Below the pieces are notes generated by a model. The model had not been told where the DNA came from and made no database searches. It was given only the letters and a program-made list of their open reading frames with translations. Below are positions 1 to 64,000 of a DNA stretch of 64,000 nucleotides, in pieces. The translations under genes were made by a program, and so were the position numbers. The stretch is from Anolis carolinensis. Its lineage: Eukaryota. Location: positions 259,624,525 through 259,688,524 of the forward strand of contig NC_085841.1 in the NCBI RefSeq assembly GCF_035594765.1. Reading direction: 5' to 3'. How positions within the stretch are numbered: the stretch's first letter is position 1; each line of letters opens with the position of its first letter.

Positions 1-977
1 ATATAGGATGTGTCTACCAACTGACATTTACCATGAAATCAAAGTAGGCTCCCTGTATATTATATCACTGAGGGACAGTTCTGGAGAAACAGTTTTGGGT
101 AAGGCATTTGTTCTTGACAGCTTTCTGGAACCATGTTTGGGTTAAATGAGTGTTCGGTGTGATCCAGAGTATTTTTAATGTTTAAATGTATGAGTCTCCA
201 AATCTGGTCTTAACAATGCTTACTTAGAAGAAAATCTGGATTTACTGAAATTTAATATGAGAATTTAGATAAGGTACTTTTCGATGATAACTCCCAGAAA
301 CTTCATAACCATGACCTCTAGCTCTGTTTAAGGTATTCTAAAGACTACAACCTTAGCTAATATAAGAATATATAAACATGTAATATTTGTCATGGGTTAG
401 AAAATTAGACATTTTATTTTATATATTGTGTTTGAAATTTGTTCTATTGGTAAAGTGGTTTTTTCTTTTTCAAAATGTTCAAAACAATTTTTAAAGGGTT
501 AGAAAGTAGCTCATTCATGCATTACGGCTTTGGGGGTTATACATGCATGTGTTCACTTCTTAATGACCAAATCTGAATGCATTGCAAGAATTGTTACATT
601 GTGTTTTCATCTCATACACCTGACTCCAGGACATATGAAAAGAGTACAATTCATTAAGTCTGTTTCTCCTACAGACCAAATCTGTTAAATTCAATCTGCA
701 CAGATATTCTCCTTTGCTTCTAGCAATGATTCTCTAACATTTTCAATCAAACCTGCATATTCTTTGTGACTTCAGTCTTGGTTGTCATTGCAGCCTTCTG
801 TGTCAAACCGACTTGAGGGAGAAAGGACAAACTTTTTTTCTAAACTGGTTGGGGAAAAGAGAGTTAATTCTTCCTTTCAAATTTGTGCCGCCTCCTTTTA
901 AGAGCTCTGAAACAATACAGCATGCATCTTAGATAAATAATTCCTAATGCTAGTAATATTGTGTTGTCTTCTCCTAG

Positions 978-1183
978 GAAATCAACTGACCCAAGCTGTC
1001 ATGCACCAATATTACAATCCATCTAATGTCAGGAGGTTATTTGGTGTTGTGAAAAGTCCAAACCTGGAAGAAATCTTCTATAAGAGCAAACCACGCTATT
1101 TTAAACGCACCAGTTCTGCAGTTTGGAACTCTCCACCATTCCCAGGCGGCAAATCTGTATCATCTAATTTCAAGAGATGGTGA
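978..1183 (+). CDS. INCENP: INCENP copy A, terminal coding exon (IN-box C-terminal half)
   Basis: Acceptor ctcctag|G at 977/978; encodes [15 protein letters not shown]...[19 protein letters not shown]...RW*, the Aurora-binding IN-box with the TSS motif; identical to 35751-35956. Confidence 0.95.
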
Positions 1184-9987: not shown

Positions 9988-10077
9988 CAGGCATGGGCCC
10001 TCCAGGTGTTTTGGACTTCAACTCCCACGGGAGTTGAAATCCAAAACACCTGGAGGGCCGGAGTTTACTCATTCCTG
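9988..10077. mobile_element. Short hAT MITE (caggcatggg family) abutting the promoter
   Basis: Internal palindrome ccctccaggtgttttgga / tccaaaacacctggaggg; near-TSD ctctagtg / ctccagtg. Confidence 0.8.
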
Positions 10078-10139
10078 CTCCAGTGTAACCCCGAGACTTC
10101 CCTTCCTTCCGTTGCGCCTAAGCCCAGCCCCTTCCTGGG

Positions 10140-10343
10140 CTTTACTTCGGTAGCTGCGTCTCAGCCAATAGCCGGCCCCGTCGTGGAGGCGCGCGCTGCT
10201 CATTGGACCGCGGGGAGTGACGTTGTTTGAAAAAAATATTTCAACGGCGACAAGCCTGGGCTGCGGGCGTTTAGAGCGCGGGTCGCTGTTAACAGTTGGC
10301 TGCGGAAATTTCGCCTCTGTAGGCTTGGATCCGCAAAGCAGCA
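10140..10343 (+). promoter_or_regulatory. INCENP copy B CpG-rich G2/M-type promoter and 5' leader
   Basis: CpG cluster; CCAAT 10165-10169; inverted CCAAT 10202-10206; TGACGT 10218-10223; CHR TTTGAA 10226-10231; MYB-type CAACGG 10242-10247; no TATA box. Confidence 0.8.
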
Positions 10344-13147
10344 ATGGCGGGGAACCCAAGGGGTGAGTCCCAGGGAAGGCTTTAAGGGTCGCCCGCCTCC
10401 GCCTCGCATCTTCCTTTTGTGCACAGCGAATCAGAATGGGAAAACTGGGTTGTTTGGGACTTTGGGGTGTTTGCGTGCCTTGGGGGGTATCTTCACGGGG
10501 CAATTCATTCAGTTCGGTACCGCATGTGATAGCCACTCCTTGGCTTCCTGATGATCAAAACATTCTGCCCCCAACGTTTTGGATATGCGATGCTCAACGT
10601 ATTGATATTGTGGTTGTTAGACTTTAAAGCAGGCATGGGCCAACTTGGGCCCTCCAGGTGTTTTGGACTCCAACTCCCACCATTCCTCACAGCCTCAGGC
10701 CCTTTCCTTTTTCCCCCTCAGCCGCTTAAGGAAAGGGCCTGAGGCTGTGAGGAATGGTGGGAGTTTGAGTCCAAAACACTTGGAGGGCCCAAGTTGGCCC
10801 ATGCCTGCTTTAAGGCATATTCAAGGAGTGTTACAGTTAGTGCACCCCTCCTTACTCACTTCCTCATCACTTGTTAATGTTGGAAGAAATGTGCTCCATT
10901 TGTTGACAGTTGTGGATTTTGTTCTTCTGTCATTTTAAGGTCTATGCATAAATCATGGATCTGTTCTCTAAAATTTTAATTGTGCATTCTCAAGTGTATA
11001 AAAAACTGTTAAGGTATAAAGAAAACGGGTCAGGTTTTGCAAGCATCAGCACCAAGGTGGATCAGTGATTCTCAGTCTTCGGGTACCCAGATGTTTTGGC
11101 CTTCAACTCTAAGAAATCCTAACAGCTGGTAAACTGGCAGGGATTTCTGGGAGTTGTATTTATTTATGTATTGCATTTATATACCGCTTTTCTCACTGCT
11201 AGGGGAGGACTCAAAGCAGTTCACAGCATAATCAATAACAAAATTAAATGCCTCACATATGTAAACATAAACGATTAAAACAACATTTAAAACTATGGAA
11301 TAAAAATGATTAAAATTATAAAACTGTGATAGCAATCACAGGTACAACACAAAACATTTAGGCCATTGTATCAATCCAGGGTGTTTTTCCATATTTTTGT
11401 CAATCGCCAAATGCCTGCTTGAATAACCAGTCTTGACTTGCTTCCTGGGGACCCACAGGTTGAGAACCACTGGAATAGAATATGTGTTAAGCGAAAAAAT
11501 CTCATTCTGGTGGTCATTATATGCAGGTGCTTGTTCAGGCCAGTAAGTTTGGTCCACACCTAGTGGAGTATAACTGGATGTGTTTTGAGATACATGGTGC
11601 TCTCTCCCTTGGGAGGTGGAGAAGCCATGCTCTCTGTGTTTATGTTATGCATGCAAGGACTTTGTTCATTTTGTTGCTCTTCAGGATTTATTTTTGATGT
11701 AATGCCACAAGTTTATGTTTTTGATTCTGCTGAATAAGTAAATTTATGTTTCCTCTTTCATCTGTGTGAAGCTACTGTGTCTTTGTTGTTGGATCAGATT
11801 CCGCATAAACGTCAACAAAAGCTACATTGTACGGGATGCTGTGGCCTCAATCTGCTCAATTTTATATTATTGCTTCCCCAAGGGCACTTGGAGCCCTGAA
11901 GTGCGCAGTGGGTTAAACCACTAAGCGGCTGACGCTGCTGACCGAAAGGTTGGTGGTTCATATCCGGGAAGTGGGGTGGGTGCCTGCTGTTAGCCCCAGC
12001 TTCTGTAAACCTAGCAGTTCGAAAACATGCAAATGTGACTACATCAATAGGTACTGCTCTGGCGGGAAGGTAACAGCACTCCATGCAGTCATGCCTGCCA
12101 CATGACTTTGGAGGTGTCTATGGACAACACCGGCTCTTTGGCACAGAAATGGAGATGAGCACCAACCCCCAGAGTCGGACATGACTAGAATGCCAGGGGA
12201 AAACCTTTACCTTTTGGGAGCTCTTGGTGGCACAGTGGATTAAACAGCTGAGCTTCTGAACTTGCTGATTGAAAAGTCAGCAGTTCAAATCTGGGAATCT
12301 GTTGCGGTTACTGTCAAAAATTATTTGCGATAACATTATAAAGCAGTCCAAGAAAATACAATAATGCAATTAGTGGGGAAATACTCAACAGTTTATAGCT
12401 AGGAGAAAAGCAAATGAAAAATCTGTTTCAAGAAATACTAAAAGTAAGCCAGCACCGAGACTTGGTGGTATACAAGAGGGGTGATTGTTTCATACGTTGG
12501 GTACCATTAGGAAAAAGACACTTCAATTCCTTGCTGCCAAATGAATATCTACAAACTCTAGCACAGTCAATAATACTTTTTTTCTGGAGATTGTATTGGG
12601 ATCTGTCAGTCATAATCTCCTTGTCCTTGAAATGGGATACAAGATGGTTAAAAATGCAAAATAAAACAATAATAATAATACATATTTATTTGTATCCCAC
12701 TTTTCTCCCTAAAACAAGACCTAAAGCGGCTCACAACATTGTGTAAAATAATATAAAACAATGTACATATATAAAACACAAACTATAAAAACAATTTTAC
12801 AATTTAGAGATAAGTATACATATTTAAAAACATTAATCTAATACAATTATTGCAAGCTACTCAACAAGACAGATAAAAGTTAGCCTTCCTGTCATTACAG
12901 CTCAGTGTCTTCATCAAAAGCTTGCACAAACAGGAAGGTTTTTAGCTGCTTTTTAGAAACAAAACTATTAAAAGACAGGCAAGAAATATCCACAGATAAA
13001 ATACAGATTGACAAGCCAGAAGTATTCCTACGTAGTGATATCTTGGCCCTTGATTGTGCATGTGCAGTCAGACCTCTATATTTGCTAGGGTTAGAAGCAC
13101 CGGGCCCCTGCAAAAGTGAAACACTGCAAATAAAGACAGTGGTTTTT

Positions 13148-13188
<41 letters not shown>

Positions 13189-16100
13189 CTAAGATAACAC
13201 CTCTCTAGCAATTTCTGGATTCTCCAGTGTGACTGAAGGAGGTTGACCACAGGCTCCTTATACACTGCCATATAATCCAGTTCTGAGTAGATAATCTCGA
13301 TTATATATGCAATGTAGAAGGGGCCAAGGACTCACTGGAAAACCTTGAAATTCCTTGAGAGAACATTTGAATAAAATCTGTGAATAATAAATCCTCAAAA
13401 GTCAAAGCTGCAAATGTTGTGGGCTGATCATATAAGGCATTGTATGCTACCAATATTTTACATTTATTTCTGGAGTTAACTAGTATAGCCAGTAGGGAAT
13501 TCTTCATCCTTACAGCAATAGATGTATGATTAGGGCCCCATCTGTGTATCTCAGAATCTGATCTCAGATTATTTGCTTTAAACTGGATTATATGAGTCTC
13601 CATTGTCAGATAACCTGGGATAAGAAGATAATATGTGTAGAAGGGGCCTAGGTTCCTGACTAGGTTGCCTTATCTAACAGAGCTTCCAAACTGTGTGTCA
13701 CAACATGTTAATGTGTTGGCTGCAGTGTGCACGTATGCCACAGCAATGTTACAGGAAATAACAAAATATTGGAAATATATGTTACTATCTTATAAATTGT
13801 GTATTTTAAATATATAAATGAAAGGTTTGATGAGATATGTTGCATCCCCAGACATTTCATTATTACAACTTATGTATATTTCCATGTCTCCAATTGGTTA
13901 ACACAGGCATTACTGGCTGTGAGGAATTGTGGGAGTTGAAGTCCAAAACACCTGGAGGGCCGAAGTTTGCCCATGCCTGGGTTAACACCTCCAATATGCT
14001 AGTAAAGCTGATTTACCGTGTTGCAAAATGATGAATGTCTAAAAAATGTGTCACCAAAACAAAATGTTTAGAAAGCTCTGCCCTATCGCTTTCAGACACA
14101 CACTACTTTCAAAATAGTTATATTTGACTTTAATTTAAAGTTAGGCTGCTGGCACTTGCCTGATTCTTGAGTATTTCGTTTCAACACAATCTAGTCTGTT
14201 TAAGGTTGTTTTGCTAAACCTTAGACAACATTATCAGGTATTTCTGTTACTTGAGCAAGAAGAACCTCTTTGTTTGTTTTTTGCAGACCGAGCAATGCCG
14301 AAGATGGTAAGCCTCATGAGGCTGGAAGAAGAATCGCAGAATCTATGGAGACAACTTCTTGATAATGTTGACAAGACAGACTTTTTGTGGATGGAGGAGA
14401 TTCTTGAAGAGGCGCAAAAGATGTTCAGCAGGTAAAATCTCACAATATGCTGGGAAAGGTGCCAAAAGCAAATATTTGGTTCTTTATATGTGTTGAAACT
14501 AACTGTTCCAAAACTGAATGAAAGATTGTCATCCTGGATATATTAGCTTTAAATCAGAGAAACTAAATCCTTTCTAAATTGTAACTAACTGAAATCAATA
14601 TTTTTCTTACTGGTATTGGTGGTCATAAGAAAACAGACTGGTTTGTAACTGAATTGTTTTTAATCAGTCTAGAGGCATAATCCTAAAACGTTTAGCTATG
14701 CAGCCTCTAATTATATTTCATGGAATTATATATTTTGGTTGGTACTTTCTATTCACATTGCTTATTTGAAGGCTGAGGCCTCATCAAGACACTCCTTTTT
14801 AAGGACTATTGTGATCTTACGTTATGTTTTTTTATATGCTCAATTTTATGAAATATGAATATCATATCTGATGGCTGAAGAAATGCAAAGTATAATGCCA
14901 CCAGATGTCTGTCCCTTAGACCAGGGCTTCTTAAACTTTTCCATTCATACTCCCTTTTGCCTGATAAATTTTACATGACTCCGGGTATATAGGTATATAT
15001 AAAATAAGTATGAAAATCTAACATTTACTGATAAGAAATCAGCATTTGTAAGGTTTGCTAAACAGGCTGATTTTCCTTTTTATGAAGTACAGCTGACGCA
15101 TCTGCATAGTCCACTGTAAACACTGCACAATAAATTTGTGTAAATGTCAAAAATAGCTACTATGTGGTGTTCAGAAAACTTATTGTTTCCAAATTTTTCA
15201 GTACCCCAACATTGAACTAAAGGGACCCCATTTGGGACCGGGAGCCACAGTTTAAGAAGCAGTGCCTTAGACTATGTGCAGAAAGCTTTCTCAAATTATA
15301 GATGAGTTTGGGTACATTGCCCAGGTCAGGAAACAGATAAGTATAGGTAAACATATTTTGGGTTCATCTACACACTGACCATTCACAGGATGGCATGGAG
15401 GAGCAATCCACCATGATTGGTTTAACCCCTGCATTTCACCCAGGAAAATCTGAGGTAACCCTTTACTGCGCTGCAGAAGATTTCAATTTTTCCACATTCC
15501 AGGGCAAAATTGGTTCCGCAGGATGCATTGTAGACACCTGGTCTTGCTGACATGCTTTGTAGGATTTGGAGTGAGGGGTTACTTAAAAATGCCTTAAAGG
15601 CATGCCTGGCTAGCAGCGGAGCTATTTGACCAGGGAGGGATAACCTCCTGTGCCTATGGAGCGCTTGTAAGTATGTTTCTCTGCACTTGGAACACACACA
15701 AACACACACACAATGAGCAAATTGAGGCCAGAAACATACTCACCTTCCTGGGCTTAAAATAGTTCCATACCTTTCAATGTAATAACCTCCACAGCAAAAC
15801 CATTTCCAAGATGCATTATAGTGTCCATGTATGTGGGCCCTTTGTTTTTGTAATACTGTATATCTAAATCTGAAATGCATCTTTTGTTACTGAAGTGTGT
15901 TAAAAATTGTAGCAATGGCCTAGGATTGTCCTGAAGGTGATTTAGAATGACGGCGTAATATCTGTCATTTTAACCAGAAGCTACTCAGGTTGCTCCTGAC
16001 ACGGAAAAAAAACCCTGTCAGCATGGCTCTTGATCTGCAGAAGATATTGTACCATAGAATAATAGCCAGGACACATGATTCTGGCCTTTTCAGTCCTGCA

Positions 16101-19100
16101 ACTTTTCATGCATGGATTGATTTTCAATAAGAAATAATTTAGCCATCTGTAACATGTGATAGATTATTTGTTCATTAAACAGCCTGGGCAAAGGCAATAA
16201 CAGGCTGGGATTTCAACTGTTAATGTTCTTATGTGTCTATGCAGCAGCTTCAATGGCAAACAGTTGCTGATGCCCAAAACTCCATCACAGAAAAATCGCC
16301 AGAAAAAGAGTCGTATTTCATCTGCTAAGCACGACCAGTTTGTCAAAAAGAGGTAGGGTGGAATATTATATGGAGGTCAAGTTGACAATGAGTGATGGGA
16401 TAATTTACAATTGACATTCTAAGTTGACATTTGGGGAAAATATTGAGATTGGAAGAAAGCCGGCATCATGTAATGCTTGAGTGTTAAAAAAAAAAAAAAG
16501 GTTCTTGAACAACCAGAGTTGGAATCTTCGCTTGTTCGTGGAAACTCACTAGGTGCCCTTGGGCAAATAACACATTTTCAACCTCAGGAAAGTAATGGCA
16601 AACTCCTTTTGGGGGAAAAATGTGATGGGGCCACATCAGTTACCCACACAAATCAGTGCTTCTGAAAACAACTGGGAAACTTTGTACAGATTTATTTGGA
16701 TACCAAAGCTTAATGCTCCATTAAGATTCAACTGCACACTGAAAATTCCAGGTTCTGATCTATCTGAAATTTCTTTGACCTTAGAAGGGTTTTGAAGCTT
16801 ACCTGCTGTCTGCAGTGAATTAAAAATTCTTCAATATATCTACTATCTTTTCTGAAAAGAAAAGAAATAAAGAAGAAACAGTGATATAAGATAATGGTGC
16901 AACTGCCTGTCCTTTAAATATCTTGTTTTACATGTATAGAGCTTTCAGACATTAACAAACTACCAGTTTAGTTCTCCATGCATCAGATATCATGTGCAGA
17001 AGAAGGCAGTAATGGAAAGCCTCATTCAAGTCTATACAAAATTTCCCATTTTGATCATAGTGAGATTTACGAGTGATGTGTAATGTGTGAGGTTGTGGGT
17101 TCATTATCATGTTGGGACTGACAACAGCAGGATTTTGTTAAGTTTCATATTGAAACATCTATCAGTTCAATTAATGAAAAATGTATCAAAAACTTCATGT
17201 AGATAAATAGAGAAGTTGGTACTTCTCCAAGATCTTCCAGGGAGGCCCTCCTCTCACTTCCATCTTCCTCACAATTAGGTCTGGTGGGGACGAAAGAGGG
17301 GGGCCTTCTCAGCCATGGCCTCCAGACTCTGGAAATCCCTCACCAGGGAGATTAGGTTAGCTCCCTCGCTTTCTTCCTTCAGGAAACAGTTAAAGACCTG
17401 GATGTTTCAGTTGGCCTTTGGTTAGACAGTCATTAGATAATCAGTCCCAGATGGTATTATTCTATCCTGTATTTTATTAGGTCCTTATTATCTATGCACT
17501 TAACTCATTATTTTATTCTTGCATTGCTGCTCCAGTTTCTCCACCTAAGTAGATGATAGAACTGCGCCTGGTGGTTGACTGATAACTATCAACTGTTTTA
17601 GTATTCTTGTTTTATACTGTATTACTGTATTTATCTTTTATACTATGAATTGTATTTATATTGTTGTTTATTTTGTCAATGTTGTTTGGGCCTTTGCACC
17701 ATGTAAGCCGCCCCAAGTCCCCACGGGGAGATGGTGGCGGGGTATAAATAAAGTTGTTGTTGTTATTATTATTATCTCGTAATATCTATTAGCTTTACTT
17801 TTCAGTACACTTGTACCCTATCATTTTTCTGACAATGTCTTCCTTTTATTAGATTATCAAAAAGAAATGGTAACCAGGCAAGTCTGCAACATGAAAGAGA
17901 TCTGACTATTTTTGCAGAGAATATATCACCTTGTTGCCGTGTGACTAGGTCTCGTGCTGCCAGGTCAGCCAGGACCTCAGAAAATTCTGTTCAGAAAGCT
18001 ACTGTTCCTTTAGCTAAAGGGAGAATAGCACTAGTGGAAATTAGTGCTAATGAGAGGCACAGTGCTGAATTGCACTTTAAAAAAACACCACCCCCGGAAA
18101 AGAAGGTTTCACTGAGCATCCCATTGTCATCTCAAGAGACCTCTACAAACAGAGAGCAACCTCTGTCCAGAGTTTCTTTGATTGTGATCCCAGATACCCC
18201 TGAAGCACAAATAAAAAAAGAGGAGCGAGGAGCTTCCAAGCTGAAAATTGCTAATGGGTCAATTGCCAAAACCACTAAAAGTAAAGAACCCATCACAGAT
18301 GAGAAGACTGCATGTGCTCAACAACAAGAGAATTGTCAACCTTCTGATATGGAAGTCAAGTTGAACCTCAGTGAAGATCCATGGACACCCCGAGTACCAA
18401 AAGAAAAACGTCAGTCAGTGCGGCGAAGCCTAATGGGTAGGCCATCCCTAAAATGCAGCACCTCTTTGGTTGCACGGTGCTCACTAAGTGCCAAAAGGAA
18501 AAGAGCTGTCCAGAAATCTATGTTGAAGCGTAAAGCATCCCAGCAGTCATCCAGTGCTTCTGGGCACCCAAGCTGTAAGTTTGTACACCATGAGATAGTA
18601 TTACTTTTCTTCGCTCCCTCTATTTTATCTGCCTGTCCATTGATGTGTTGAATCAAAATGTTGGGAAACTGAAATTATTATTATTATGTTTTAAGTAACC
18701 ATGGATTTTTCAAGGAAGAGAATCCTCGTGTTAAAATATCTGTCTCAGTTCAAGGTCTTTGAAGCACTTTCAAAAGTAGAAAAAAATGAGGCCTGATAAA
18801 TAGAGAAAGTCTTAATTTTTGGCAGGTTTGAGTGAAATGTGTGCATTTAACTTGCTGCTGCATTCTGCAACATAATGGGAACCATTAGATTTCACAGCAT
18901 TCACATTCTAATATTCTAGAGTGCTAATAAGAAACATGAATTAGGATAAGATGTGTTAGAGGACAGAAGTCTTTTTGAAATAGGAATCCACCTACTGATC
19001 TATGATTTCAGAATAATCACAGTTTGTGATATATAATTTTTATTAAATGATTTTATATCAAGTGTACAGGGAAAGAGTGAGAACATAATTTATAGAAAAG

Positions 19101-31100: not shown

Positions 31101-31601
31101 AAATCTGGCTGCTGAGAGAGAACTGCAGAAGAAGAAGGAGCAGGAAAAGCTGCGGGCACAACGGTAAGGACAAAAGGGCCCAGAAGGCTTTCATTCATTT
31201 CATGATGTCTTGGGCCCTATTGCATGCGTTATTTTGAAGAATTAAGCCTCAGAAATGTGTGATTATATGTGGTGGTGTTACTCTGCCTAAAGCATTCCTC
31301 CTTTTCAATTCAGATAGTAACGGAGCTTGTCTGTTTGTAGGGAATATGAACGACAAGAGAAAGAGAAGGTGACACGCTTGCAGAAAGAGGTTATAGCAGC
31401 AGCGAAAGAGAAGGAGCGTCTTAGAAAAGAGGAAGAGGAGAATGAAAGGAAAAGGGTGAGATGCTTGTCGGCCTCAGAGTTATTGTCTTGCTTGCTTTCA
31501 TTTGTCATATTGAAAGTTAAAGTTGTGGAAAACAGGTAGGAAAATGTAGGCCTACTGAGGGGAGAGTGTTAGCCTCTCAGTCCCTGAAACATCAATTAGA
31601 A

Positions 31602-31647
<46 letters not shown>

Positions 31648-34600
31648 CCCCCCCCCAAAAAAAATTGGTAAAATCACAAGCCAAAGGTTTAAAGAACCCA
31701 GCCTCAAAAGTGATCTGAAAAGAATTTCTGATTTCATTTTTTGTACAATTCTCAAGCAAGATATCCTTGCAGTCAATAGAAAATTGGCCTTCTTGCCCTT
31801 TGCTTTACCACCTTTGAGCTTGGAGCTGGTGCCTTTAACTAGCAATGTGTCGCCTTCTCTTTTTAAAGAAAGAACAATTGAAGCAAGAAGAGGAACAAAA
31901 GGCAGCAGAGGCCAAGACGGCTAGCAAACAACTGAATGTGACGGTAGATATTCAGGTGAGTTCTGAAAAACAGACATCAGAAGTTGGAAGAAATAATCAC
32001 CCTATGAACTTGTTCAGCGAAGGAATATGTACTGTACTATACAAGGGCAGAGAGCTATGCAGACAAACAGGTAACCTAATTATTTTGCTGTTCCTCCACA
32101 TTTCTTCAAACACCGCACCATATCCTGTAGTAACTCTTTAGGATTCGAAAGAGTTGTGCCCTATGCATGTGGTAAAGGACAACACTGCACAAACTTTTCT
32201 AAATGGAAAATGTATGTCATGCATTCATTTTTCTATATGATCATTCTCTCGCAACGCTACATAAACACTTTATTTTTATTATATCTGTGTGGGAATGAAT
32301 GAAAGCAGAGATTTTGGCAAATATCTGAAAATGTTTGTACTGTGTAACATAGGACCATTCTCTTGAATATTATATGTAGAAAATATAGATCTGCAGTCTG
32401 TGTATTGAATGTAATATGTGAACACCTGTAGGGAGAATAATGCTCCTGAAAGCCTCGAGTAGAGGCAGTTGCACTCTAAGGCAAAGCACAGATTTTGCTT
32501 GATTGAAAGAATTCCTTTTCAGGTTTTCCCTTTTAAAAAAACAAAAACTAATAGTGATCTTTGAGTTGCAGTTTTCAAAAACAAAACCAAACATTTTGGT
32601 TGTGTTTGTTGATCCTGTGTGTCTCTCAGAACTGGCCCCATATCTGCCAATGTTTCCCACTCCTACGGTTGCGTGTGTGAATGTATGTTTCTCTTTACAC
32701 TGTGTCTGGCCTCAGTAACACAAGTCAGCATTTGATATTTATTTATTTATTTTATTTCCAATATTTATATCCCGCCCTTTTCACCCGAAGGGACTCAGGG
32801 TGGCTTACAACCCTGGCACAATTAGATGCCTATACAAAATCAATCAACAGTACATAAAATCAGTTAAAAAGCAATTAAATACAATATAAAATTACAATAT
32901 ATAAATTTTAAAATAACCAAATCTGAATGCATTGCAAGAATTGTTACATTGTGTTTTCATCTCATACACCTGACTCCAGGACATATGAAAAGAGTACAAT
33001 TCATTAAGTCTGTTTCTCCTACAGACCAAATCTGTTAAATTCAATCGGCACAGATATTCTCCTTTGCTTCTAGCAATGATTCTCTAACATTTTCAGTCAA
33101 ACCTGCATATTCTTTGTGACTTCAGTCTTGGTTGTCATTGCAGCCTTCTGTGTCAAACCGACTTGAGGGGAAAAGGACAAACTTTTTTTCTAAACTGGTT
33201 GGGGAAAAGAGAGACTGCAGATTAGGACGCGGAACAATGGCTTCAAACTATAGGAAATGAGATTCCACCTGGACATCAGGAGGAACTTCCTGACTGAGAA
33301 GTGTTTGGCAGTGGAACTCTCTGCCCCGGACTGTGGTGGAGGCTCCTCCTTTGGAGGCTTTTAAACAGGCTGGATGGCCATCTGTCGGGGGTGCTTTGAA
33401 TGCGATTTCCTGCTTCTTGGCAGGGGGTGGACTGGATGGCCCATGAGGTCTTTTCCAACTCTACTATTCTATGATTCTATGCAATAGGTATCAAAAATAA
33501 CAATTGCCAATCTGTTAGGGTTTTTGCTTTTCTCTGATTTGTTGATAGCAGATATGTTAGCCTATCCATATTCATGATTTCCATTATTTTCAAAATCCAT
33601 TGATCCATTGCCAGTACTTCTTTGTCTCTCCACAATTTGGCATAAACTATCCTTGCATAAACTATCATTGTTCAAAGACTACTTAAAAATGAAAAGATGA
33701 AAATATTAATTTGAAACAAGAAAGAATGAGGATAGAAGAAAAATAGTTGTTCCTTAAGTGAAATGGTTAAAGAAAAGGGATGCCCGAAGGAATAATATCA
33801 AATATACCAGGACTATGGAAAGTTTTTACCCAACACCATAAAGTAGATGGAAGTCAATAAGTATATCCTTTTTTAATTTTTTATTGTTATTACCACTGCT
33901 TTTTTGTAACACTCAGCAACTTCTTTTCTTTTTTGTTTTTCTTTTCTCTTTTTTTTCTCCCTTTCTCTTCTTTTTTTCTAAGCACTTGGGTTTTTATATT
34001 TTATTTATTTGGAAAATTTCACTCTAATAAAAATATTTCAAAAAAGGTATCAAAAATAAAAACATCAACTTAATTCCATTAATGTCATTAAAATGGGGCA
34101 AGATGCATGTAGTCATTGGCTTATGGAACAAGAATGCCACTAGCAGACTACCTATAAAGATTGTGTATAAAGTCTAAAAGAAGGTATGCTTTTCTCAGAT
34201 TTGAATGCTTGGAACATTGAAAGATACATCTTTCAACACACACACATACAAGCACAAAAATTAGCAATATCCAGCACAAAGTGTAAGGTGTGTCTTATAT
34301 AGTCACTCATGAAATGCCTGTTGGAATAGAAAATACTTTATTTGCCTTTTAAAAGAAAGTAGCGGTGGTGTCAGTCTAACTTTACTGGAAGAGAAAATAA
34401 GTAACTTATTGTTTGAAAAATGATGGAACCTCTCAGAAGCATGCTTGAGATTCTACCATGTTGCTACAACTTATCTAAGATTATCTGGTCTTAAATACAG
34501 TAATCAAATGTACCTTTCTGTCCAGAACTCACCTTGTAATTCATATGAGATGACACCACAGAGCCACAAGCACCCCAAGGTTAACATTGACGATTATGGG

Positions 34601-35956
34601 ATGGATTTGAATAGTGATGACTCAACAGATGATGAAAGCCGGCCACGCAAGCCAATCCCTGCATGGGCTTCTGGTAAGTTTTTAATTCATCTGGTACTCA
34701 TTTGCATGGTGGCAGAGCATTTCCCTATTTTTATTGTTGCTGCAATAACCACAATCTGATGATAGACAGATTCATATAGGATGTGTCTACCAACTGACAT
34801 TTACCATGAAATCAAAGTAGGCTCCCTGTATATTATATCACTGAGGGACAGTTCTGGAGAAACAGTTTTGGGTAAGGCATTTGTTCTTGACAGCTTTCTG
34901 GAACCATGTTTGGGTTAAATGAGTGTTCGGTGTGATCCAGAGTATTTTTAATGTTTAAATGTATGAGTCTCCAAATCTGGTCTTAACAATGCTTACTTAG
35001 AAGAAAATCTGGATTTACTGAAATTTAATATGAGAATTTAGATAAGGTACTTTTCGATGATAACTCCCAGAAACTTCATAACCATGACCTCTAGCTCTGT
35101 TTAAGGTATTCTAAAGACTACAACCTTAGCTAATATAAGAATATATAAACATGTAATATTTGTCATGGGTTAGAAAATTAGACATTTTATTTTATATATT
35201 GTGTTTGAAATTTGTTCTATTGGTAAAGTGGTTTTTTCTTTTTCAAAATTTTCAAAACAATTTTTAAAGGGTTAGAAAGTAGCTCATTCATGCATTACGG
35301 CTTTGGGGGTTATACATGCATGTGTTCACTTCTTAATGACCAAATCTGAATGCATTGCAAGAATTGTTACATTGTGTTTTCATCTCATACACCTGACTCC
35401 AGGACATATGAAAAGAGTACAATTCATTAAGTCTGTTTCTCCTACAGACCAAATCTGTTAAATTCAATCTGCACAGATATTCTCCTTTGCTTCTAGCAAT
35501 GATTCTCTAACATTTTCAATCAAACCTGCATATTCTTTGTGACTTCAGTCTTGGTTGTCATTGCAGCCTTCTGTGTCAAACCGACTTGAGGGAGAAAGGA
35601 CAAACTTTTTTTCTAAACTGGTTGGGGAAAAGAGAGTTAATTCTTCCTTTCAAATTTGTGCCGCCTCCTTTTAAGAGCTCTGAAACAATACAGCATGCAT
35701 CTTAGATAAATAATTCCTAATGCTAGTAATATTGTGTTGTCTTCTCCTAGGAAATCAACTGACCCAAGCTGTCATGCACCAATATTACAATCCATCTAAT
35801 GTCAGGAGGTTATTTGGTGTTGTGAAAAGTCCAAACCTGGAAGAAATCTTCTATAAGAGCAAACCACGCTATTTTAAACGCACCAGTTCTGCAGTTTGGA
35901 ACTCTCCACCATTCCCAGGCGGCAAATCTGTATCATCTAATTTCAAGAGATGGTGA
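10344..35956 (+). CDS. INCENP: INCENP copy B, complete 19-exon gene, about 855 aa (846 aa if the exon-2 ATG at 14295 is used)
   Basis: Exons with ag/gt and matching phases: 10344-10362, 14287-14431, 16245-16352, 17853-18574, 21146-21194, 21611-21644, 23093-23192, 24626-24677, 25709-25811, 25894-26031, 27034-27045, 29240-29349, 29428-29548, 30244-30366, 30988-31163, 31341-31455, 31869-31955, 34526-34673, 35751-35956 (sum 2568 nt, no internal stop). Motifs: [47 protein letters not shown]-rich [36 protein letters not shown]. Confidence 0.95.
10630..10807. mobile_element. Near-perfect palindromic hAT MITE in intron 1 (unit 2: 45403-45580)
   Basis: TIRs caggcatgggccaactt / aagttggcccatgcctg; arms of about 78 bp; near-TSD ctttaaag / ctttaagg. 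Confidence 0.9.
11063..11472. mobile_element. hAT MITE (cagtggttctcaacct family) split by an L2 3' fragment (about 11158-11444, - strand)
   Basis: Left part cagtgattctc...tctgggagttgta; (tatt)n plus ggactcaaagcagtt insert; right part ggggacccacaggttgagaaccactg. Confidence 0.75.
11890..12296 (+). mobile_element. Sauria SINE (11890-12214) followed by a second SINE head fragment (unit 2: 46663-47069)
   Basis: ggagccctg..gcgcagtgggttaaacc head, ggagatgagcaccaacccccagagtcggac core, acctttacct tail; second head ggagctcttggtggcacagtgg at about 12217. Confidence 0.85.
13149..13188. repeat. (TA)n(CA)n microsatellite
   Basis: Directly visible; same length in unit 2. Confidence 0.9.
13678..14080. mobile_element. 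hAT non-autonomous element with a nested 76-bp MITE (13904-13979)
   Basis: Outer TIRs cagagcttccaaac / gtttagaaagctctg; inner caggcat...atgcctg flanked by perfect TSD ggttaaca (13896-13903, 13980-13987). Confidence 0.75.
14922..15264. mobile_element. hAT non-autonomous element, 343 bp (unit 2: 49695-50037)
   Basis: TIRs cagggcttcttaaact / agtttaagaagcagtg; perfect TSD ccttagac at 14914-14921 and 15265-15272. Confidence 0.9.
17226..17775 (+). mobile_element. L2-clade LINE 3' fragment (unit 2: 51999-52548)
   Basis: Homologous to the L2 ORF2 end (agatcttccagggaggccctcctctc...ctctggaaatccct); tgtaagccgccccaagtccccacggggag stem-loop; (gtt)n(att)n tail. Confidence 0.85.
19579..19725. mobile_element. 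PIF/Harbinger-like MITE; related copies at about 13253-13326, 13537-13650 and 25081-25330
   Basis: TIRs gccccttctaca(t/c)tgccatata / tatatgacagtgtagaaggggc. Confidence 0.7.
20106..20714. mobile_element. Mariner-type MITE with a nested insertion in its right terminus
   Basis: Left end tagtagtctcgcttatccaa; repeated tggataa; right end ttggataagtgaga[insert]gtgagactctattgta. Confidence 0.75.
20429..20699. mobile_element. hAT (Tip100-like) MITE with G/C tracts (unit 2: 55928-56198)
   Basis: Ends cagggccgtagc / gctacaggcctg; near-TSD gtgagatt / gtgagact. Confidence 0.75.
20874..21103. mobile_element. Old hAT MITE ending 42 bp upstream of exon 5
   Basis: TIRs caatgtggtccaacc / ggttggaccacactg; ggccgcatgtggccc subterminal motif; TSD eroded. 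Confidence 0.65.
21755..22535 (+). mobile_element. Decayed CR1 LINE fragments (with a MITE piece inside)
   Basis: cttgatttcagtaaggcctttgacaaggt ([10 protein letters not shown]-like), gaagctgggtatgtttagcttggagaaga, and CR1 3' end gaagaacttcctgac...ggccatctgttgggagtgctttg. Confidence 0.75.
23838..24145 (-). mobile_element. CR1 LINE 3' fragment
   Basis: tagaatcagagttggaagagacc...gacagatggccatccagcct; reverse complement of the CR1 end at 33214-33481. Confidence 0.75.
25360..25538 (+). mobile_element. Internally deleted SINE2-like copy ending in a (CA)n tail
   Basis: gaagcctcccacaaggatggtaaaaacatc...ggttgctcctgacac shared with 4126-4395; the (CA)n is 2 bp shorter in unit 2. Confidence 0.7.
31607..31642. 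repeat. (TG)n microsatellite, intron 16
   Basis: Directly visible. Confidence 0.9.
32740..32915 (-). mobile_element. L2 3' tail fragment (similar tails at about 12680-12960 and 26328-26500)
   Basis: (ttta)n, cccgcccttttcacccgaagggactcagggtggcttac. Confidence 0.7.
32916..33213 (+). repeat. 298-bp local duplication of intron-18 sequence (35339-35636, also 566-863)
   Basis: accaaatctgaatgc...ggggaaaagagag present on both sides of exon 18 with about 4 mismatches. Confidence 0.92.
33214..33481 (+). mobile_element. 5'-truncated CR1 LINE 3' end
   Basis: aggacgcggaacaatggcttcaaacta...gaacttcctgact...ttccaactctactattctatgattctatg tail. Confidence 0.85.
33501..34044 (+). mobile_element. L1-clade insertion with 5' inversion
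   Basis: 15-bp TSD aggtatcaaaaataa (33486-33500, 34045-34059); inverted ORF2 end on - strand 33668-33501 ([11 protein letters not shown]...LTDWQL) continues on + strand from about 33668 ([10 protein letters not shown]), then T-rich 3' UTR, aataaa and A tail. Confidence 0.85.
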
Positions 35957-45116: not shown

Positions 45117-47920
45117 ATGGCGGGGAACCCAAGGGGTGAGTCCCAGGGAAGGCTTTAAGGGTCGCCCGCCTCCGCCTCGCATCTTCCTTTTGTGCACAGC
45201 GAATCAGAATGGGAAAACTGGGTTGTTTGGGACTTTGGGGTGTTTGCGTGCCTTGGGGGGTATCTTCACGGGGCAATTCATTCAGTTCGGTACCGCATGT
45301 GATAGCCACTCCTTGGCTTCCTGATGATCAAAACATTCTGCCCCCAACGTTTTGGATATGCGATGCTCAACGTATTGATATTGTGGTTGTTAGACTTTAA
45401 AGCAGGCATGGGCCAACTTGGGCCCTCCAGGTGTTTTGGACTCCAACTCCCACCATTCCTCACAGCCTCAGGCCCTTTCCTTTTTCCCCCTCAGCCGCTT
45501 AAGGAAAGGGCCTGAGGCTGTGAGGAATGGTGGGAGTTTGAGTCCAAAACACTTGGAGGGCCCAAGTTGGCCCATGCCTGCTTTAAGGCATATTCAAGGA
45601 GTGTTACAGTTAGTGCACCCCTCCTTACTCACTTCCTCATCACTTGTTAATGTTGGAAGAAATGTGCTCCATTTGTTGACAGTTGTGGATTTTGTTCTTC
45701 TGTCATTTTAAGGTCTATGCATAAATCATGGATCTGTTCTCTAAAATTTTAATTGTGCATTCTCAAGTGTATAAAAAACTGTTAAGGTATAAAGAAAACG
45801 GGTCAGGTTTTGCAAGCATCAGCACCAAGGTGGATCAGTGATTCTCAGTCTTCGGGTACCCAGATGTTTTGGCCTTCAACTCTAAGAAATCCTAACAGCT
45901 GGTAAACTGGCAGGGATTTCTGGGAGTTGTATTTATTTATGTATTGCATTTATATACCGCTTTTCTCACTGCTAGGGGAGGACTCAAAGCAGTTCACAGC
46001 ATAATCAATAACAAAATTAAATGCCTCACATATGTAAACATAAACGATTAAAACAACATTTAAAACTATGGAATAAAAATGATTAAAATTATAAAACTGT
46101 GATAGCAATCACAGGTACAACACAAAACATTTAGGCCATTGTATCAATCCAGGGTGTTTTTCCATATTTTTGTCAATCGCCAAATGCCTGCTTGAATAAC
46201 CAGTCTTGACTTGCTTCCTGGGGACCCACAGGTTGAGAACCACTGGAATAGAATATGTGTTAAGCGAAAAAATCTCATTCTGGTGGTCATTATATGCAGG
46301 TGCTTGTTCAGGCCAGTAAGTTTGGTCCACACCTAGTGGAGTATAACTGGATGTGTTTTGAGATACATGGTGCTCTCTCCCTTGGGAGGTGGAGAAGCCA
46401 TGCTCTCTGTGTTTATGTTATGCATGCAAGGACTTTGTTCATTTTGTTGCTCTTCAGGATTTATTTTTGATGTAATGCCACAAGTTTATGTTTTTGATTC
46501 TGCTGAATAAGTAAATTTATGTTTCCTCTTTCATCTGTGTGAAGCTACTGTGTCTTTGTTGTTGGATCAGATTCCGCATAAACGTCAACAAAAGCTACAT
46601 TGTACGGGATGCTGTGGCCTCAATCTGCTCAATTTTATATTATTGCTTCCCCAAGGGCACTTGGAGCCCTGAAGTGCGCAGTGGGTTAAACCACTAAGCG
46701 GCTGACGCTGCTGACCGAAAGGTTGGTGGTTCATATCCGGGAAGTGGGGTGGGTGCCTGCTGTTAGCCCCAGCTTCTGTAAACCTAGCAGTTCGAAAACA
46801 TGCAAATGTGACTACATCAATAGGTACTGCTCTGGCGGGAAGGTAACAGCACTCCATGCAGTCATGCCTGCCACATGACTTTGGAGGTGTCTATGGACAA
46901 CACCGGCTCTTTGGCACAGAAATGGAGATGAGCACCAACCCCCAGAGTCGGACATGACTAGAATGCCAGGGGAAAACCTTTACCTTTTGGGAGCTCTTGG
47001 TGGCACAGTGGATTAAACAGCTGAGCTTCTGAACTTGCTGATTGAAAAGTCAGCAGTTCAAATCTGGGAATCTGTTGCGGTTACTGTCAAAAATTATTTG
47101 CGATAACATTATAAAGCAGTCCAAGAAAATACAATAATGCAATTAGTGGGGAAATACTCAACAGTTTATAGCTAGGAGAAAAGCAAATGAAAAATCTGTT
47201 TCAAGAAATACTAAAAGTAAGCCAGCACCGAGACTTGGTGGTATACAAGAGGGGTGATTGTTTCATACGTTGGGTACCATTAGGAAAAAGACACTTCAAT
47301 TCCTTGCTGCCAAATGAATATCTACAAACTCTAGCACAGTCAATAATACTTTTTTTCTGGAGATTGTATTGGGATCTGTCAGTCATAATCTCCTTGTCCT
47401 TGAAATGGGATACAAGATGGTTAAAAATGCAAAATAAAACAATAATAATAATACATATTTATTTGTATCCCACTTTTCTCCCTAAAACAAGACCTAAAGC
47501 GGCTCACAACATTGTGTAAAATAATATAAAACAATGTACATATATAAAACACAAACTATAAAAACAATTTTACAATTTAGAGATAAGTATACATATTTAA
47601 AAACATTAATCTAATACAATTATTGCAAGCTACTCAACAAGACAGATAAAAGTTAGCCTTCCTGTCATTACAGCTCAGTGTCTTCATCAAAAGCTTGCAC
47701 AAACAGGAAGGTTTTTAGCTGCTTTTTAGAAACAAAACTATTAAAAGACAGGCAAGAAATATCCACAGATAAAATACAGATTGACAAGCCAGAAGTATTC
47801 CTACGTAGTGATATCTTGGCCCTTGATTGTGCATGTGCAGTCAGACCTCTATATTTGCTAGGGTTAGAAGCACCGGGCCCCTGCAAAAGTGAAACACTGC
47901 AAATAAAGACAGTGGTTTTT

Positions 47921-47961
<41 letters not shown>

Positions 47962-50900
47962 CTAAGATAACACCTCTCTAGCAATTTCTGGATTCTCCAG
48001 TGTGACTGAAGGAGGTTGACCACAGGCTCCTTATACACTGCCATATAATCCAGTTCTGAGTAGATAATCTCGATTATATATGCAATGTAGAAGGGGCCAA
48101 GGACTCACTGGAAAACCTTGAAATTCCTTGAGAGAACATTTGAATAAAATCTGTGAATAATAAATCCTCAAAAGTCAAAGCTGCAAATGTTGTGGGCTGA
48201 TCATATAAGGCATTGTATGCTACCAATATTTTACATTTATTTCTGGAGTTAACTAGTATAGCCAGTAGGGAATTCTTCATCCTTACAGCAATAGATGTAT
48301 GATTAGGGCCCCATCTGTGTATCTCAGAATCTGATCTCAGATTATTTGCTTTAAACTGGATTATATGAGTCTCCATTGTCAGATAACCTGGGATAAGAAG
48401 ATAATATGTGTAGAAGGGGCCTAGGTTCCTGACTAGGTTGCCTTATCTAACAGAGCTTCCAAACTGTGTGTCACAACATGTTAATGTGTTGGCTGCAGTG
48501 TGCACGTATGCCACAGCAATGTTACAGGAAATAACAAAATATTGGAAATATATGTTACTATCTTATAAATTGTGTATTTTAAATATATAAATGAAAGGTT
48601 TGATGAGATATGTTGCATCCCCAGACATTTCATTATTACAACTTATGTATATTTCCATGTCTCCAATTGGTTAACACAGGCATTACTGGCTGTGAGGAAT
48701 TGTGGGAGTTGAAGTCCAAAACACCTGGAGGGCCGAAGTTTGCCCATGCCTGGGTTAACACCTCCAATATGCTAGTAAAGCTGATTTACCGTGTTGCAAA
48801 ATGATGAATGTCTAAAAAATGTGTCACCAAAACAAAATGTTTAGAAAGCTCTGCCCTATCGCTTTCAGACACACACTACTTTCAAAATAGTTATATTTGA
48901 CTTTAATTTAAAGTTAGGCTGCTGGCACTTGCCTGATTCTTGAGTATTTCGTTTCAACACAATCTAGTCTGTTTAAGGTTGTTTTGCTAAACCTTAGACA
49001 ACATTATCAGGTATTTCTGTTACTTGAGCAAGAAGAACCTCTTTGTTTGTTTTTTGCAGACCGAGCAATGCCGAAGATGGTAAGCCTCATGAGGCTGGAA
49101 GAAGAATCGCAGAATCTATGGAGACAACTTCTTGATAATGTTGACAAGACAGACTTTTTGTGGATGGAGGAGATTCTTGAAGAGGCGCAAAAGATGTTCA
49201 GCAGGTAAAATCTCACAATATGCTGGGAAAGGTGCCAAAAGCAAATATTTGGTTCTTTATATGTGTTGAAACTAACTGTTCCAAAACTGAATGAAAGATT
49301 GTCATCCTGGATATATTAGCTTTAAATCAGAGAAACTAAATCCTTTCTAAATTGTAACTAACTGAAATCAATATTTTTCTTACTGGTATTGGTGGTCATA
49401 AGAAAACAGACTGGTTTGTAACTGAATTGTTTTTAATCAGTCTAGAGGCATAATCCTAAAACGTTTAGCTATGCAGCCTCTAATTATATTTCATGGAATT
49501 ATATATTTTGGTTGGTACTTTCTATTCACATTGCTTATTTGAAGGCTGAGGCCTCATCAAGACACTCCTTTTTAAGGACTATTGTGATCTTACGTTATGT
49601 TTTTTTATATGCTCAATTTTATGAAATATGAATATCATATCTGATGGCTGAAGAAATGCAAAGTATAATGCCACCAGATGTCTGTCCCTTAGACCAGGGC
49701 TTCTTAAACTTTTCCATTCATACTCCCTTTTGCCTGATAAATTTTACATGACTCCGGGTATATAGGTATATATAAAATAAGTATGAAAATCTAACATTTA
49801 CTGATAAGAAATCAGCATTTGTAAGGTTTGCTAAACAGGCTGATTTTCCTTTTTATGAAGTACAGCTGACGCATCTGCATAGTCCACTGTAAACACTGCA
49901 CAATAAATTTGTGTAAATGTCAAAAATAGCTACTATGTGGTGTTCAGAAAACTTATTGTTTCCAAATTTTTCAGTACCCCAACATTGAACTAAAGGGACC
50001 CCATTTGGGACCGGGAGCCACAGTTTAAGAAGCAGTGCCTTAGACTATGTGCAGAAAGCTTTCTCAAATTATAGATGAGTTTGGGTACATTGCCCAGGTC
50101 AGGAAACAGATAAGTATAGGTAAACATATTTTGGGTTCATCTACACACTGACCATTCACAGGATGGCATGGAGGAGCAATCCACCATGATTGGTTTAACC
50201 CCTGCATTTCACCCAGGAAAATCTGAGGTAACCCTTTACTGCGCTGCAGAAGATTTCAATTTTTCCACATTCCAGGGCAAAATTGGTTCCGCAGGATGCA
50301 TTGTAGACACCTGGTCTTGCTGACATGCTTTGTAGGATTTGGAGTGAGGGGTTACTTAAAAATGCCTTAAAGGCATGCCTGGCTAGCAGCGGAGCTATTT
50401 GACCAGGGAGGGATAACCTCCTGTGCCTATGGAGCGCTTGTAAGTATGTTTCTCTGCACTTGGAACACACACAAACACACACACAATGAGCAAATTGAGG
50501 CCAGAAACATACTCACCTTCCTGGGCTTAAAATAGTTCCATACCTTTCAATGTAATAACCTCCACAGCAAAACCATTTCCAAGATGCATTATAGTGTCCA
50601 TGTATGTGGGCCCTTTGTTTTTGTAATACTGTATATCTAAATCTGAAATGCATCTTTTGTTACTGAAGTGTGTTAAAAATTGTAGCAATGGCCTAGGATT
50701 GTCCTGAAGGTGATTTAGAATGACGGCGTAATATCTGTCATTTTAACCAGAAGCTACTCAGGTTGCTCCTGACACGGAAAAAAAACCCTGTCAGCATGGC
50801 TCTTGATCTGCAGAAGATATTGTACCATAGAATAATAGCCAGGACACATGATTCTGGCCTTTTCAGTCCTGCAACTTTTCATGCATGGATTGATTTTCAA

Positions 50901-62542: not shown

Positions 62543-64000
62543 GTAAGTAACAAGATTGATCTTAGATTAGATGTGTTTGCACATAATTAACAGTGTGTCA
62601 TCCAATGGCATCCCTAACATGCATAGCAACATCCATTCTTTGAAGGGGCTGCCTGGCCTTTGCAACAAACCTTACTAAAATGTAGACTACTTGCACAATT
62701 TCTAGTGGCATTTCACTGTTTTCTCAATGTTGTACAAGAACCATGGGCATTTCATTTCAGAATGTGATTATTCATATTTATCATTTCATTCATCCAATGT
62801 TTCAGTTTATTTACACTACCCACTTAATTTAATTTAGATTAGAAGGATCAAGACAGGCAACAAAGTGCAAAAGACAAACTATAATATTATTGAACATTGC
62901 TTCGAGGAGCTTTGTTGTCTTTTTTAGATCTTGCCCATTTTATTTTAATAATGTAGCTGTTCATAGTTAATTCTAGTCTTTTTAGCTGCCCAGATCAACC
63001 CATCTAACAGTTTCTACCTGAACTAAACATACAAAAAAGGAGGAGGAAAATAATGTTGAAAAGTGCATAGTCTGCATCCTTACTTAGAAGTAAGTCCCAC
63101 AGACTTCAGTGAGACTTTCTCTCCACCAAAATAAGTGTGTTAGACTCCTTCCTCAATGTAACAGTTGTATTCAGCAGATGTCTGCTTAGTTAGAAAGAAA
63201 ACCCTGGCATGGAAGTTATTCAAGTTACTGGGAAAACTAATTGATTATTCCATTTTATATCAAATCATTTTGCTTATAGACCCTAGTAGAAATGTTAGTG
63301 TTTGTGTGTTGACAGGTTTGAGATCAGAAAAATAAGCTTAAGAAAAATATCCCTACTTCAAAAGGACTAATGGATCAATGTCCCATCTCACATTACTAGA
63401 TTTGGTTGATACTTACCGGTATATATATTTGAAAACGCAGACCAAAGAGAAGGCTGTAACACCTGGTATTGATTTCCAATTTACTGGTCTCTTTAAGTAA
63501 ATAAAACTTCTCTGGGGTGATCTATGCCTAATTTGGCCCAGGTTTTGTTCCTCTGCAGTAAGTTTGTTGGCCAGTTAAAATTCAAATCAATTTGTGAAAA
63601 TCTCTCTTTAGTTGCCACTCAGTACTTTGTACTTGCACATGCTACTTCAACTTCATTGGGGAAACAATAAACAAACCTTTCTAACATTGAGACTTCATTC
63701 TCTTCCTCCTCCTTCATGCTTCTTAGTGTATGTGTGGCATCTTGGCAGAAAATTTCATTTATTTATTAGTTATCAAGACTTGTTTCCTATTTAGGAAAGA
63801 CGTGTTGTGATGACAGTTGGCAGAACATAATCTTTTTCAAGTGACAAAGCAATGCTTTAAGTACATATCTAGAAATTACTGTTGCTTTGAATAGATGAAA
63901 ATCCAATGTGCATCCTACCCCAGCACCTGGAAAAGGTTACTTTAAAAACAATCCACTTCCATTGCTAATTATGCTGTTTGAAGACTAATTCATAGACATT

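Follow-up and report, generated by a model that had tools for sequence, protein, structure and literature searches.

The motifs that target INCENP are usually discussed from the human, chicken and frog proteins. Here we analysed a 64,000-nucleotide stretch of the Anolis carolinensis genome (NC_085841.1, positions 259,624,525 to 259,688,524; hereafter the window), in which the segment 14287-18574 had been singled out from its letters alone as part of an INCENP gene with eroded N-terminal targeting motifs and a conserved Aurora-activating IN-box. The basic patch of human INCENP, RRKKRR, has been tested only as a hexa-alanine mutant and acts through low-affinity DNA binding and through MKLP2 binding (PMC7337490; PMC12420818). 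The SSH module of vertebrate INCENP comprises a PVI beta-strand, P167/V169/I171, and an adjacent alpha-helix with E180 (Sako et al. 2024; PMC11116813). Binding of human INCENP to HP1 is abolished by the triple mutation P167A/V169A/I171A, the only one tested at this strand, and HP1 binding tunes Aurora B activity in human cells (PMC11116813). An INCENP-like gene of chicken is expressed in DT40 cells at 1.4% of the level of canonical INCENP and has no assigned function (Xu et al. 2009, PMC2806593), and in Oikopleura dioica two paralogs, INCENPa and INCENPb, divide chromosomal passenger complex (CPC) localisation and timing between them (PMC6681789).

Our analysis indicates that 14287-18574 is very probably the 5' third of A. 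carolinensis canonical INCENP, a gene that stands as five tandem, intact and transcribed copies at its ancestral locus beside a second INCENP-type gene, INCENP-like. Its N-terminal differences reflect ordinary divergence between lineages, together with a single species-specific substitution. The window gene lies on the + strand at 10344-35956 and comprises 18 exons and 17 introns, all bounded by GT..AG, and its spliced exons translate without mismatch to RefSeq isoform X2 of 851 aa (P0186; XP_062823547/551), named inner centromere protein(-like). Exons were joined only to check that the RefSeq protein was reproduced; searches were made with single exons or with database proteins. All residues quoted in the sequence-only reading were found on the + strand, at or within three bases of where it had placed them, and the human states that it had given agree with the alignment to chain C of 2QFA for the CEN helix, with RRKKRR in PMC7337490 and with P167/V169/I171 in PMC11116813.

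The window consists of head-to-tail tandem units that repeat every 34,773 bp, and each unit carries a whole INCENP gene. Self-alignment revealed that 1-28503 matches 34774-64000 at 99.98% identity, except for a 720-bp insertion at 54355-55073; this insertion is confined to one of the two units, shows 84% similarity to an inverted element found at 9011-9738 and again at 43784-44511, and was therefore acquired after the duplication. On CM069367.1 five INCENP loci are spaced at ~35 kb from one another; the genes start at 259,599,365, 259,634,868, 259,669,641, 259,705,125 and 259,740,583, and the unit-to-unit periods are unequal, at 34,773, 35,458, 35,484 and 35,503. The window holds the end of copy 1 (last exon at 1..1183, + strand, with the second half of the IN-box at ~977-1183), the whole of copy 2 and most of copy 3 (45117..64000, + strand, cut by the window end; its exon 1 ATG lies at 45117, and its exons 2 and 4 at 49060 and 52626, respectively). 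All five array proteins are intact and differ only at residues 11, 46 and 215, and the canonical-family proteins of A. carolinensis fall into one 90% cluster of 12 sequences (isoforms X1-X4 of the five loci, XP_062823539 to XP_062823557). A word search also returned two older partial A. carolinensis models (P0001 and P0002, from the AnoCar2 annotation), together with open reading frames of other squamates with IPLVEI. Nothing relevant to an amplified INCENP in lizards was found in the literature.

The stretch is present in four runs from four studies, which are stored as contigs only, a form from which levels, copy number and minor variants are not readable. Correct splicing across the GT..AG joints 14431>16245 and 16352>17853 was observed in the RNA-like runs X17 and X20, and the depth in X17 was 220-430 over exons versus ~16 in introns. 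Exon 4 is covered by contigs of all four runs with 1-3 differences, the sole difference listed for all four being at base 18224; the X17 and X20 contigs are one base off the window, at this position, which is the E215/G215 difference between copies. Here the window has A (Glu215, copies 2 and 3), against G (Gly215) in all four runs and in copies 1, 4 and 5. With exon 4 covered in this way by four runs, the Ala codon GCA at 18028-18030, discussed below, is no assembly slip.

The relationship of the array gene to other INCENP genes was examined by full-length searches that covered the named INCENPs of ~30 squamates together with turtles, crocodilians and birds. A tree of 58 proteins resolved two old sauropsid INCENP families, canonical and INCENP-like, with SH-aLRT values of 99 and 100, respectively; each family, with its turtles, archosaurs and squamates, mirrors the species tree, and mammals took no firm position relative to either. 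The array gene lies inside the canonical clade as sister to that of Anolis sagrei, with terminal branches of 0.069 versus 0.074. A search with the product of the neighbouring gene (P0051) recovered the INCENP-like family, named "INCENP-like" or "A-like", from squamates, turtles, crocodilians and birds; in most cases one contig carried both it and the canonical gene. In A. carolinensis the INCENP-like gene lies head to head just upstream of array copy 1 (L004:1-3631, minus strand), and A. sagrei has the same head-to-head neighbour (L002:1-5041, minus strand). The published primer for chicken incenp-like (PMC2806593) encodes NQAILHQ, which is present in the Gallus protein of the second family, where canonical-family galliforms read SQAVIRQ, and the family of the array gene is therefore the canonical one. 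RefSeq names the two families inconsistently, the chicken INCENP-like product being called 'inner centromere protein isoform X2'. We also considered the converse assignment, prompted by the strong INCENP_N match of the neighbour, in which the head-to-head neighbour is the canonical gene and the array a divergent paralog; this was rejected on the tree and on the chicken incenp-like primer. No other canonical-family INCENP gene of A. carolinensis turned up in the searches, and the array is therefore the canonical INCENP of the species and not an added paralog.

We then mapped the states of the N-terminal motifs onto this phylogeny. The CEN helix, which would bind Survivin and Borealin, is encoded by exon 2 (14287..14431, + strand; match to chain C of 2QFA, E 3.1e-5), where the conserved Met is at 14295 and the helix sequence with the residues quoted earlier occupies 14295-14372; its second half aligns to human INCENP in 2QFA and 6YIF (E ~3e-5). 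The Pfam model INCENP_N (PF12178, cut-off 25 bits) gave 17.3 bits for the A. carolinensis protein and 17.9 bits for exon 2, over profile positions 15-36 only. The score of the protein was the lowest of ten tested, which included A. sagrei at 22.9, six other squamates at 26.7-35.6, a turtle (Caretta) at 62.6 and the INCENP-like protein of A. carolinensis at 72.2 bits. Nearly all of the N-terminal residues taken as eroded are also found in INCENP of other lizards, and every squamate has L-E-E-(E/Q/N) in place of the L-(L/P)-x-(L/V)-C of turtles, birds and mammals. The helix of Phrynosoma reads RLEEESQKKLDEFLQNID (RLEEESQ) and that of A. sagrei RLEEEIQNQCRQFLDNAD, with the signature RLEEE.QN..RQ.LDN common to both anoles. 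Of the 47 residues of the CEN helix, 14 differ between the two anoles. Its hydrophobic positions are retained, with W/L/L/V in the window gene for the L/F/L/V of snakes.

Exon 3 (16245..16352, + strand) matches human INCENP 50-75 (6yih_C, E 3.4e-5) and carries the CDK1 site MPKTPSQK and the basic patch at 16270-16314, with TPSQK at 16279-16293 and RQKKSR at 16297-16314, in the (M/L)PKTPSQK-then-patch arrangement. RQKKSR is basic at four of six residues; it is identical in A. sagrei (P0187), reads RQKKKR in Phrynosoma, and its R-to-Q change is iguanian-wide. Among 121 canonical orthologs the number of K/R residues at the six patch positions is three in 8, four in 48, five in 51 and six in 14, and four is therefore an ordinary state. 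The acceptor of exon 3 is a tandem NAGNAG (cagcag) at 16243-16248, at which use of the alternative site would remove one Ser.

Exon 4 (17853..18574, + strand) encodes a disordered region with the putative HP1-binding SSH module, in which IALVEI at 18025-18042 is followed by a helix at 18043-18075; the interval 18028-18042 given in the sequence-only reading corresponds to ALVEI. Relative to the P-x-V-x-I pattern of the PVI strand the gene reads A-L-V-E-I, keeping Val and Ile and replacing Pro. Every A. carolinensis copy reads IALVEI, and A. sagrei and Phrynosoma read IPLVEI. The proline is kept in 101 of 118 database proteins with the motif, the other 17 being 14 A. carolinensis models, one snake and two tinamous; these independent losses gave Ala in the snake Erythrolamprus reginae and Leu in the tinamous (P0065, P0140, P0155). 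In one kangaroo rat INCENP the aligned site carries VTVKI. The SSH block of A. carolinensis equals that of A. sagrei except for the P-to-A change and one K/R difference, and the block is otherwise invariant from geckos to anoles. The SSH helix is identical in both anoles, keeps the Glu equivalent to human E180 and fits the human pattern ..SERQNAEQH... A phmmer search of the PDB with the HP1 region gave no match because the region is too diverged for phmmer, and a multiple alignment was used instead.

The C-terminal half of the asymmetry lies outside 14287-18574. Exon 17 (34526..34673, + strand) encodes the first half of the IN-box (PF03941, E 3.8e-8; human INCENP 800-848, E 1.7e-18), with SDDSTDDE at 34613-34636 and PIPAWA at 34652-34669. 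Exon 18 (35751..35956, + strand) encodes the second half (PF03941, E 1.9e-4), with the TSS motif in KRTSSAVW at 35876-35899 and the stop codon, and matches human INCENP 851-910 (E 1.9e-19) and 4af3_D (E ~2e-19). The IN-box is therefore found by PF03941 in both exons with its Aurora-binding Trp and its TSS motif present. The residues quoted in the sequence-only reading are repeated in the next unit at +34,773. Between the two ends of the protein, exons 11-16 (29240-29349, 29428-29548, 30244-30366, 30988-31163, 31341-31455 and 31869-31955, + strand) encode an E/K/R-rich region, 83-93% identical to that of other iguanians, which by sequence is the single alpha-helix (SAH), or coiled-coil, region.

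Substitution rates were assessed by an exon-wise Nei-Gojobori comparison of non-synonymous and synonymous rates (dN/dS) with the A. sagrei gene (L002). This domain-wise check, which had been suggested with the original observation, gave 0.26 for the whole gene, 0.56 for the CEN exon, 0.30 for exon 3, 0.29 for exon 4, 0.16 for the SAH and 0.25 for the IN-box, below 1 in every domain and indicating purifying selection throughout. The claimed asymmetry between a kept IN-box and a diverged N-terminus was thus confirmed by both the INCENP_N scores and the dN/dS values, and the N-terminus is faster than the IN-box in most other species pairs also. Accelerated divergence, on the other hand, was not seen: in a relative-rate test with Phrynosoma as outgroup there were 36 unique changes in A. 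carolinensis versus 44 in A. sagrei (p = 0.43), and A. carolinensis was not accelerated in any domain (CEN helix 3 versus 4, exon 4 12 versus 17; no domain significant). The CEN helix is fast on both anole branches, so that its pace is a feature of anoles at large rather than of the array-bearing species alone.

Taken together, these comparisons show a layered divergence, in which LEEE for LL.LC is squamate-wide, R-to-Q in the patch iguanian-wide, and QN..RQ.LDN with KKSR Anolis-wide. Only a handful of changes are peculiar to A. carolinensis, and P-to-A in the PVI strand is the only one of them at an otherwise almost invariant site. The idea that motif erosion is special to this gene therefore holds for the HP1 box and fails for the CEN helix and the patch, whose states are common to A. 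sagrei. The alternative foreseen at the outset, that INCENP of related lizards carries the same residues, applies in the same way to two of the three motifs (RQKKSR and RLEEE.QN..RQ.LDN in A. sagrei, RQKKKR and RLEEESQ in Phrynosoma) and not to the HP1 box.

The sequence-only reading had proposed that the gene could be a specialised or interfering paralog, still able to activate Aurora B/C but localised differently. In full, this view would have the gene lose normal targeting through Survivin/Borealin, chromatin/MKLP2 and HP1, and hence localise differently beside a working canonical INCENP. The low INCENP_N score, the lost PVI proline and the adjoining INCENP-type gene, with an INCENP_N match of 72 bits and an RKKKR patch, would all fit such a gene. 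That neighbour, however, belongs to an old INCENP-like family found in all sauropsids and is not a canonical copy, while the array gene is the canonical ortholog in the tree and the sole canonical-family gene found. Of the three motif states, two are common to A. sagrei and other lizards, neither acceleration nor a dN/dS above 1 was detected in any domain, and the protein retains the CDK site, the SSH helix and the hydrophobic positions of the CEN helix. The five copies are moreover intact and nearly identical, which does not agree with a diverged interfering copy, and we consider a paralog of this kind very unlikely. Still more improbable is an artefact of assembly, with a duplicate collapsed or expanded and the gene in truth single-copy, which would void the premise of an amplified protein. 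Units that are 99.98% identical are a type of repeat that assemblers can miscount, but these units are told apart by the 720-bp insertion, by coding variants at residues 11, 46 and 215 and by their differing periods; two different partial models (P0001, P0002) were already in the older AnoCar2 annotation, and both letters at 18224 are real, A in the window and P0182 and G in the reads and P0183.

An adaptive or compensatory shift is unlikely, though less so than either of these. P-to-A may lower the affinity for HP1, with a five-fold dosage accompanying or compensating it, perhaps in answer to a change in centromeres or heterochromatin, and the CEN helix may co-evolve with Survivin and Borealin in anoles. 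P-to-A is the sole change in a block otherwise invariant from geckos to anoles, it falls on the same branch as the amplification, HP1 binding is known to tune Aurora B in human cells, and the CEN exon has the highest dN/dS, with a borderline excess. The proline, however, has also been replaced in a snake (P-to-A) and in tinamous (P-to-L) without known amplification and is therefore dispensable at times; the CEN helix is equally fast on the A. sagrei branch, no dN/dS exceeds 1, and one substitution on one branch is indistinguishable from drift. We accordingly give a low probability to the bolder form of this idea, in which loss of the PVI proline and the five-fold amplification are linked through a changed coupling of the CPC to HP1 and heterochromatin, with dosage compensating or driving the change, and are joined by an unusually fast CEN helix in anoles.

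Several observations nonetheless count against the interpretation that we prefer, a canonical INCENP in five copies with ordinary lineage divergence. The INCENP_N score, ~27-36 bits for other squamates, is down to 22.9 for A. sagrei and 17.3 for A. carolinensis. No domain is less conserved between the two anoles than the CEN helix (70% identity), which most other species pairs conserve at least as well as exon 4, and the non-synonymous excess of the CEN exon is borderline (Fisher p = 0.057); there may have been some relaxation or adaptive remodelling in Anolis. The single P-to-A change may alter HP1 binding to some degree, only the triple mutant P167A/V169A/I171A being known to abolish it. The single-copy status of A. 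sagrei INCENP derives from the annotation and a 10 kb downstream flank only. The RNA-like runs carry no tissue identity. Three runs also contain short contigs of low depth that are ~85-88% similar to exon 4 over its 3' half (18208-18572), and for these no match was found in the window or the fetched loci. As for the flank, A. sagrei INCENP (XP_060626457) is annotated as one locus, and no second promoter or exon was detected in the 10 kb downstream of it, which agrees with that annotation.

The remaining parts of the window gene conform to the RefSeq models. A CpG-rich region, the probable promoter with the 5' untranslated region, lies at 10000..10343 on the + strand (GC 0.58 and CpG observed/expected 0.82 at 10000-10499) and matches the A. 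sagrei INCENP promoter region (L002:9802-10111). The coding part of exon 1 (10344..10362, + strand) begins with an ATG at 10344, upstream of the conserved start, and adds MAGNPR(D), such that the RefSeq A. carolinensis proteins begin MAGNPRDRAMPKM; together with 14287-14294 it would place nine residues, MAGNPRDRA, in front of the Met at which other squamate INCENPs begin. An equivalent extension, MAGSTKDQA, is present in A. sagrei INCENP. Exons 5-10 encode the middle region (21146-21194, 21611-21644, 23093-23192, 24626-24677, 25709-25811 and 25894-26031, + strand; RefSeq match, GT..AG introns). An extra exon between exons 3 and 4, considered because an acceptor at 17918 is out of phase, was rejected, as the RefSeq models and the RNA joints give the acceptor at 17853, and a frameshift suspected at 25811/25894 proved to be an 82-nt GT..AG intron. 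Predicted isoform X3 omits exons 14-15 of the SAH region, and predicted isoform X4 (P0184, 741 aa) stops just past exon 16 (31955 onward), without the IN-box. In copy 5, the last of the array (L003:32337-50614), introns 16 and 17 are much longer, with exon 17 at 46426 and exon 18 at 50411, the counterparts in copy 1 being at 34895 and 36137; both copies encode the same protein.

Judged from its motifs, the array protein most likely works as INCENP does elsewhere, as a scaffold of the CPC. Its N-terminal helix would bundle with Survivin and Borealin, the Thr of TPSQK would be the CDK1 site, and the basic patch would bind DNA and MKLP2 electrostatically. The SSH module would bind the HP1 chromoshadow dimer, the SAH helix would bind microtubules, and the IN-box with its TSS motif would activate Aurora B. 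These binding functions are probably kept, and P-to-A would at most weaken HP1 binding. Squamates can vary in the first third of the CEN helix and in the precise composition of the basic patch, with the IN-box, CDK site and SSH helix remaining fixed, which gives a useful yardstick for judging "eroded" motifs in other genomes. Such comparisons require the right paralog, since two INCENP families stand side by side in sauropsids under inconsistent RefSeq names. What stands out as truly odd is the Ala that replaces the PVI proline in an essential gene that has been amplified, a natural variant for the INCENP-HP1 interface that, alone, leaves knowledge of the passenger complex unchanged.

Set against known systems, the array gene resembles the sauropsid INCENP-like protein in being of INCENP type, with a probable CEN helix, a TPSQ site, a basic patch and an IN-box, and it adjoins the INCENP-like gene head to head; INCENP-like is nevertheless a separate old family, with an INCENP_N match of 72 bits (72.2) and a patch that reads (H/Y)RKKKR, of which the window gene is not a member. 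Oikopleura INCENPa and INCENPb exemplify a specialisation of the kind first proposed for this gene, but those paralogs are diverged and unlike in localisation, whereas the array copies are near-identical, with no visible division of labour. A. sagrei INCENP differs in keeping IPLVEI, in having no second copy within 10 kb downstream and in those 14 of 47 CEN-helix residues; it is the sister in the tree, 87% identical, and shares RQKKSR, QN..RQ.LDN, the N-terminal extension and the INCENP-like neighbour. From human INCENP the array protein departs in the first third of its CEN helix, with the squamate-wide LEEES versus LLELC, and from the human and chicken proteins in a patch with four of six basic residues, Ala for the PVI Pro, a nine-residue N-terminal extension and five tandem copies. 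Its IN-box aligns to human 800-910 (E ~1e-18), it belongs to the same family in the tree as canonical INCENP of galliforms, and its order of domains, from the probable CEN helix through TPSQK, the basic patch, the PVI/SSH module and the SAH to the IN-box with TSS, is that of human INCENP and of chicken INCENP class I/II.

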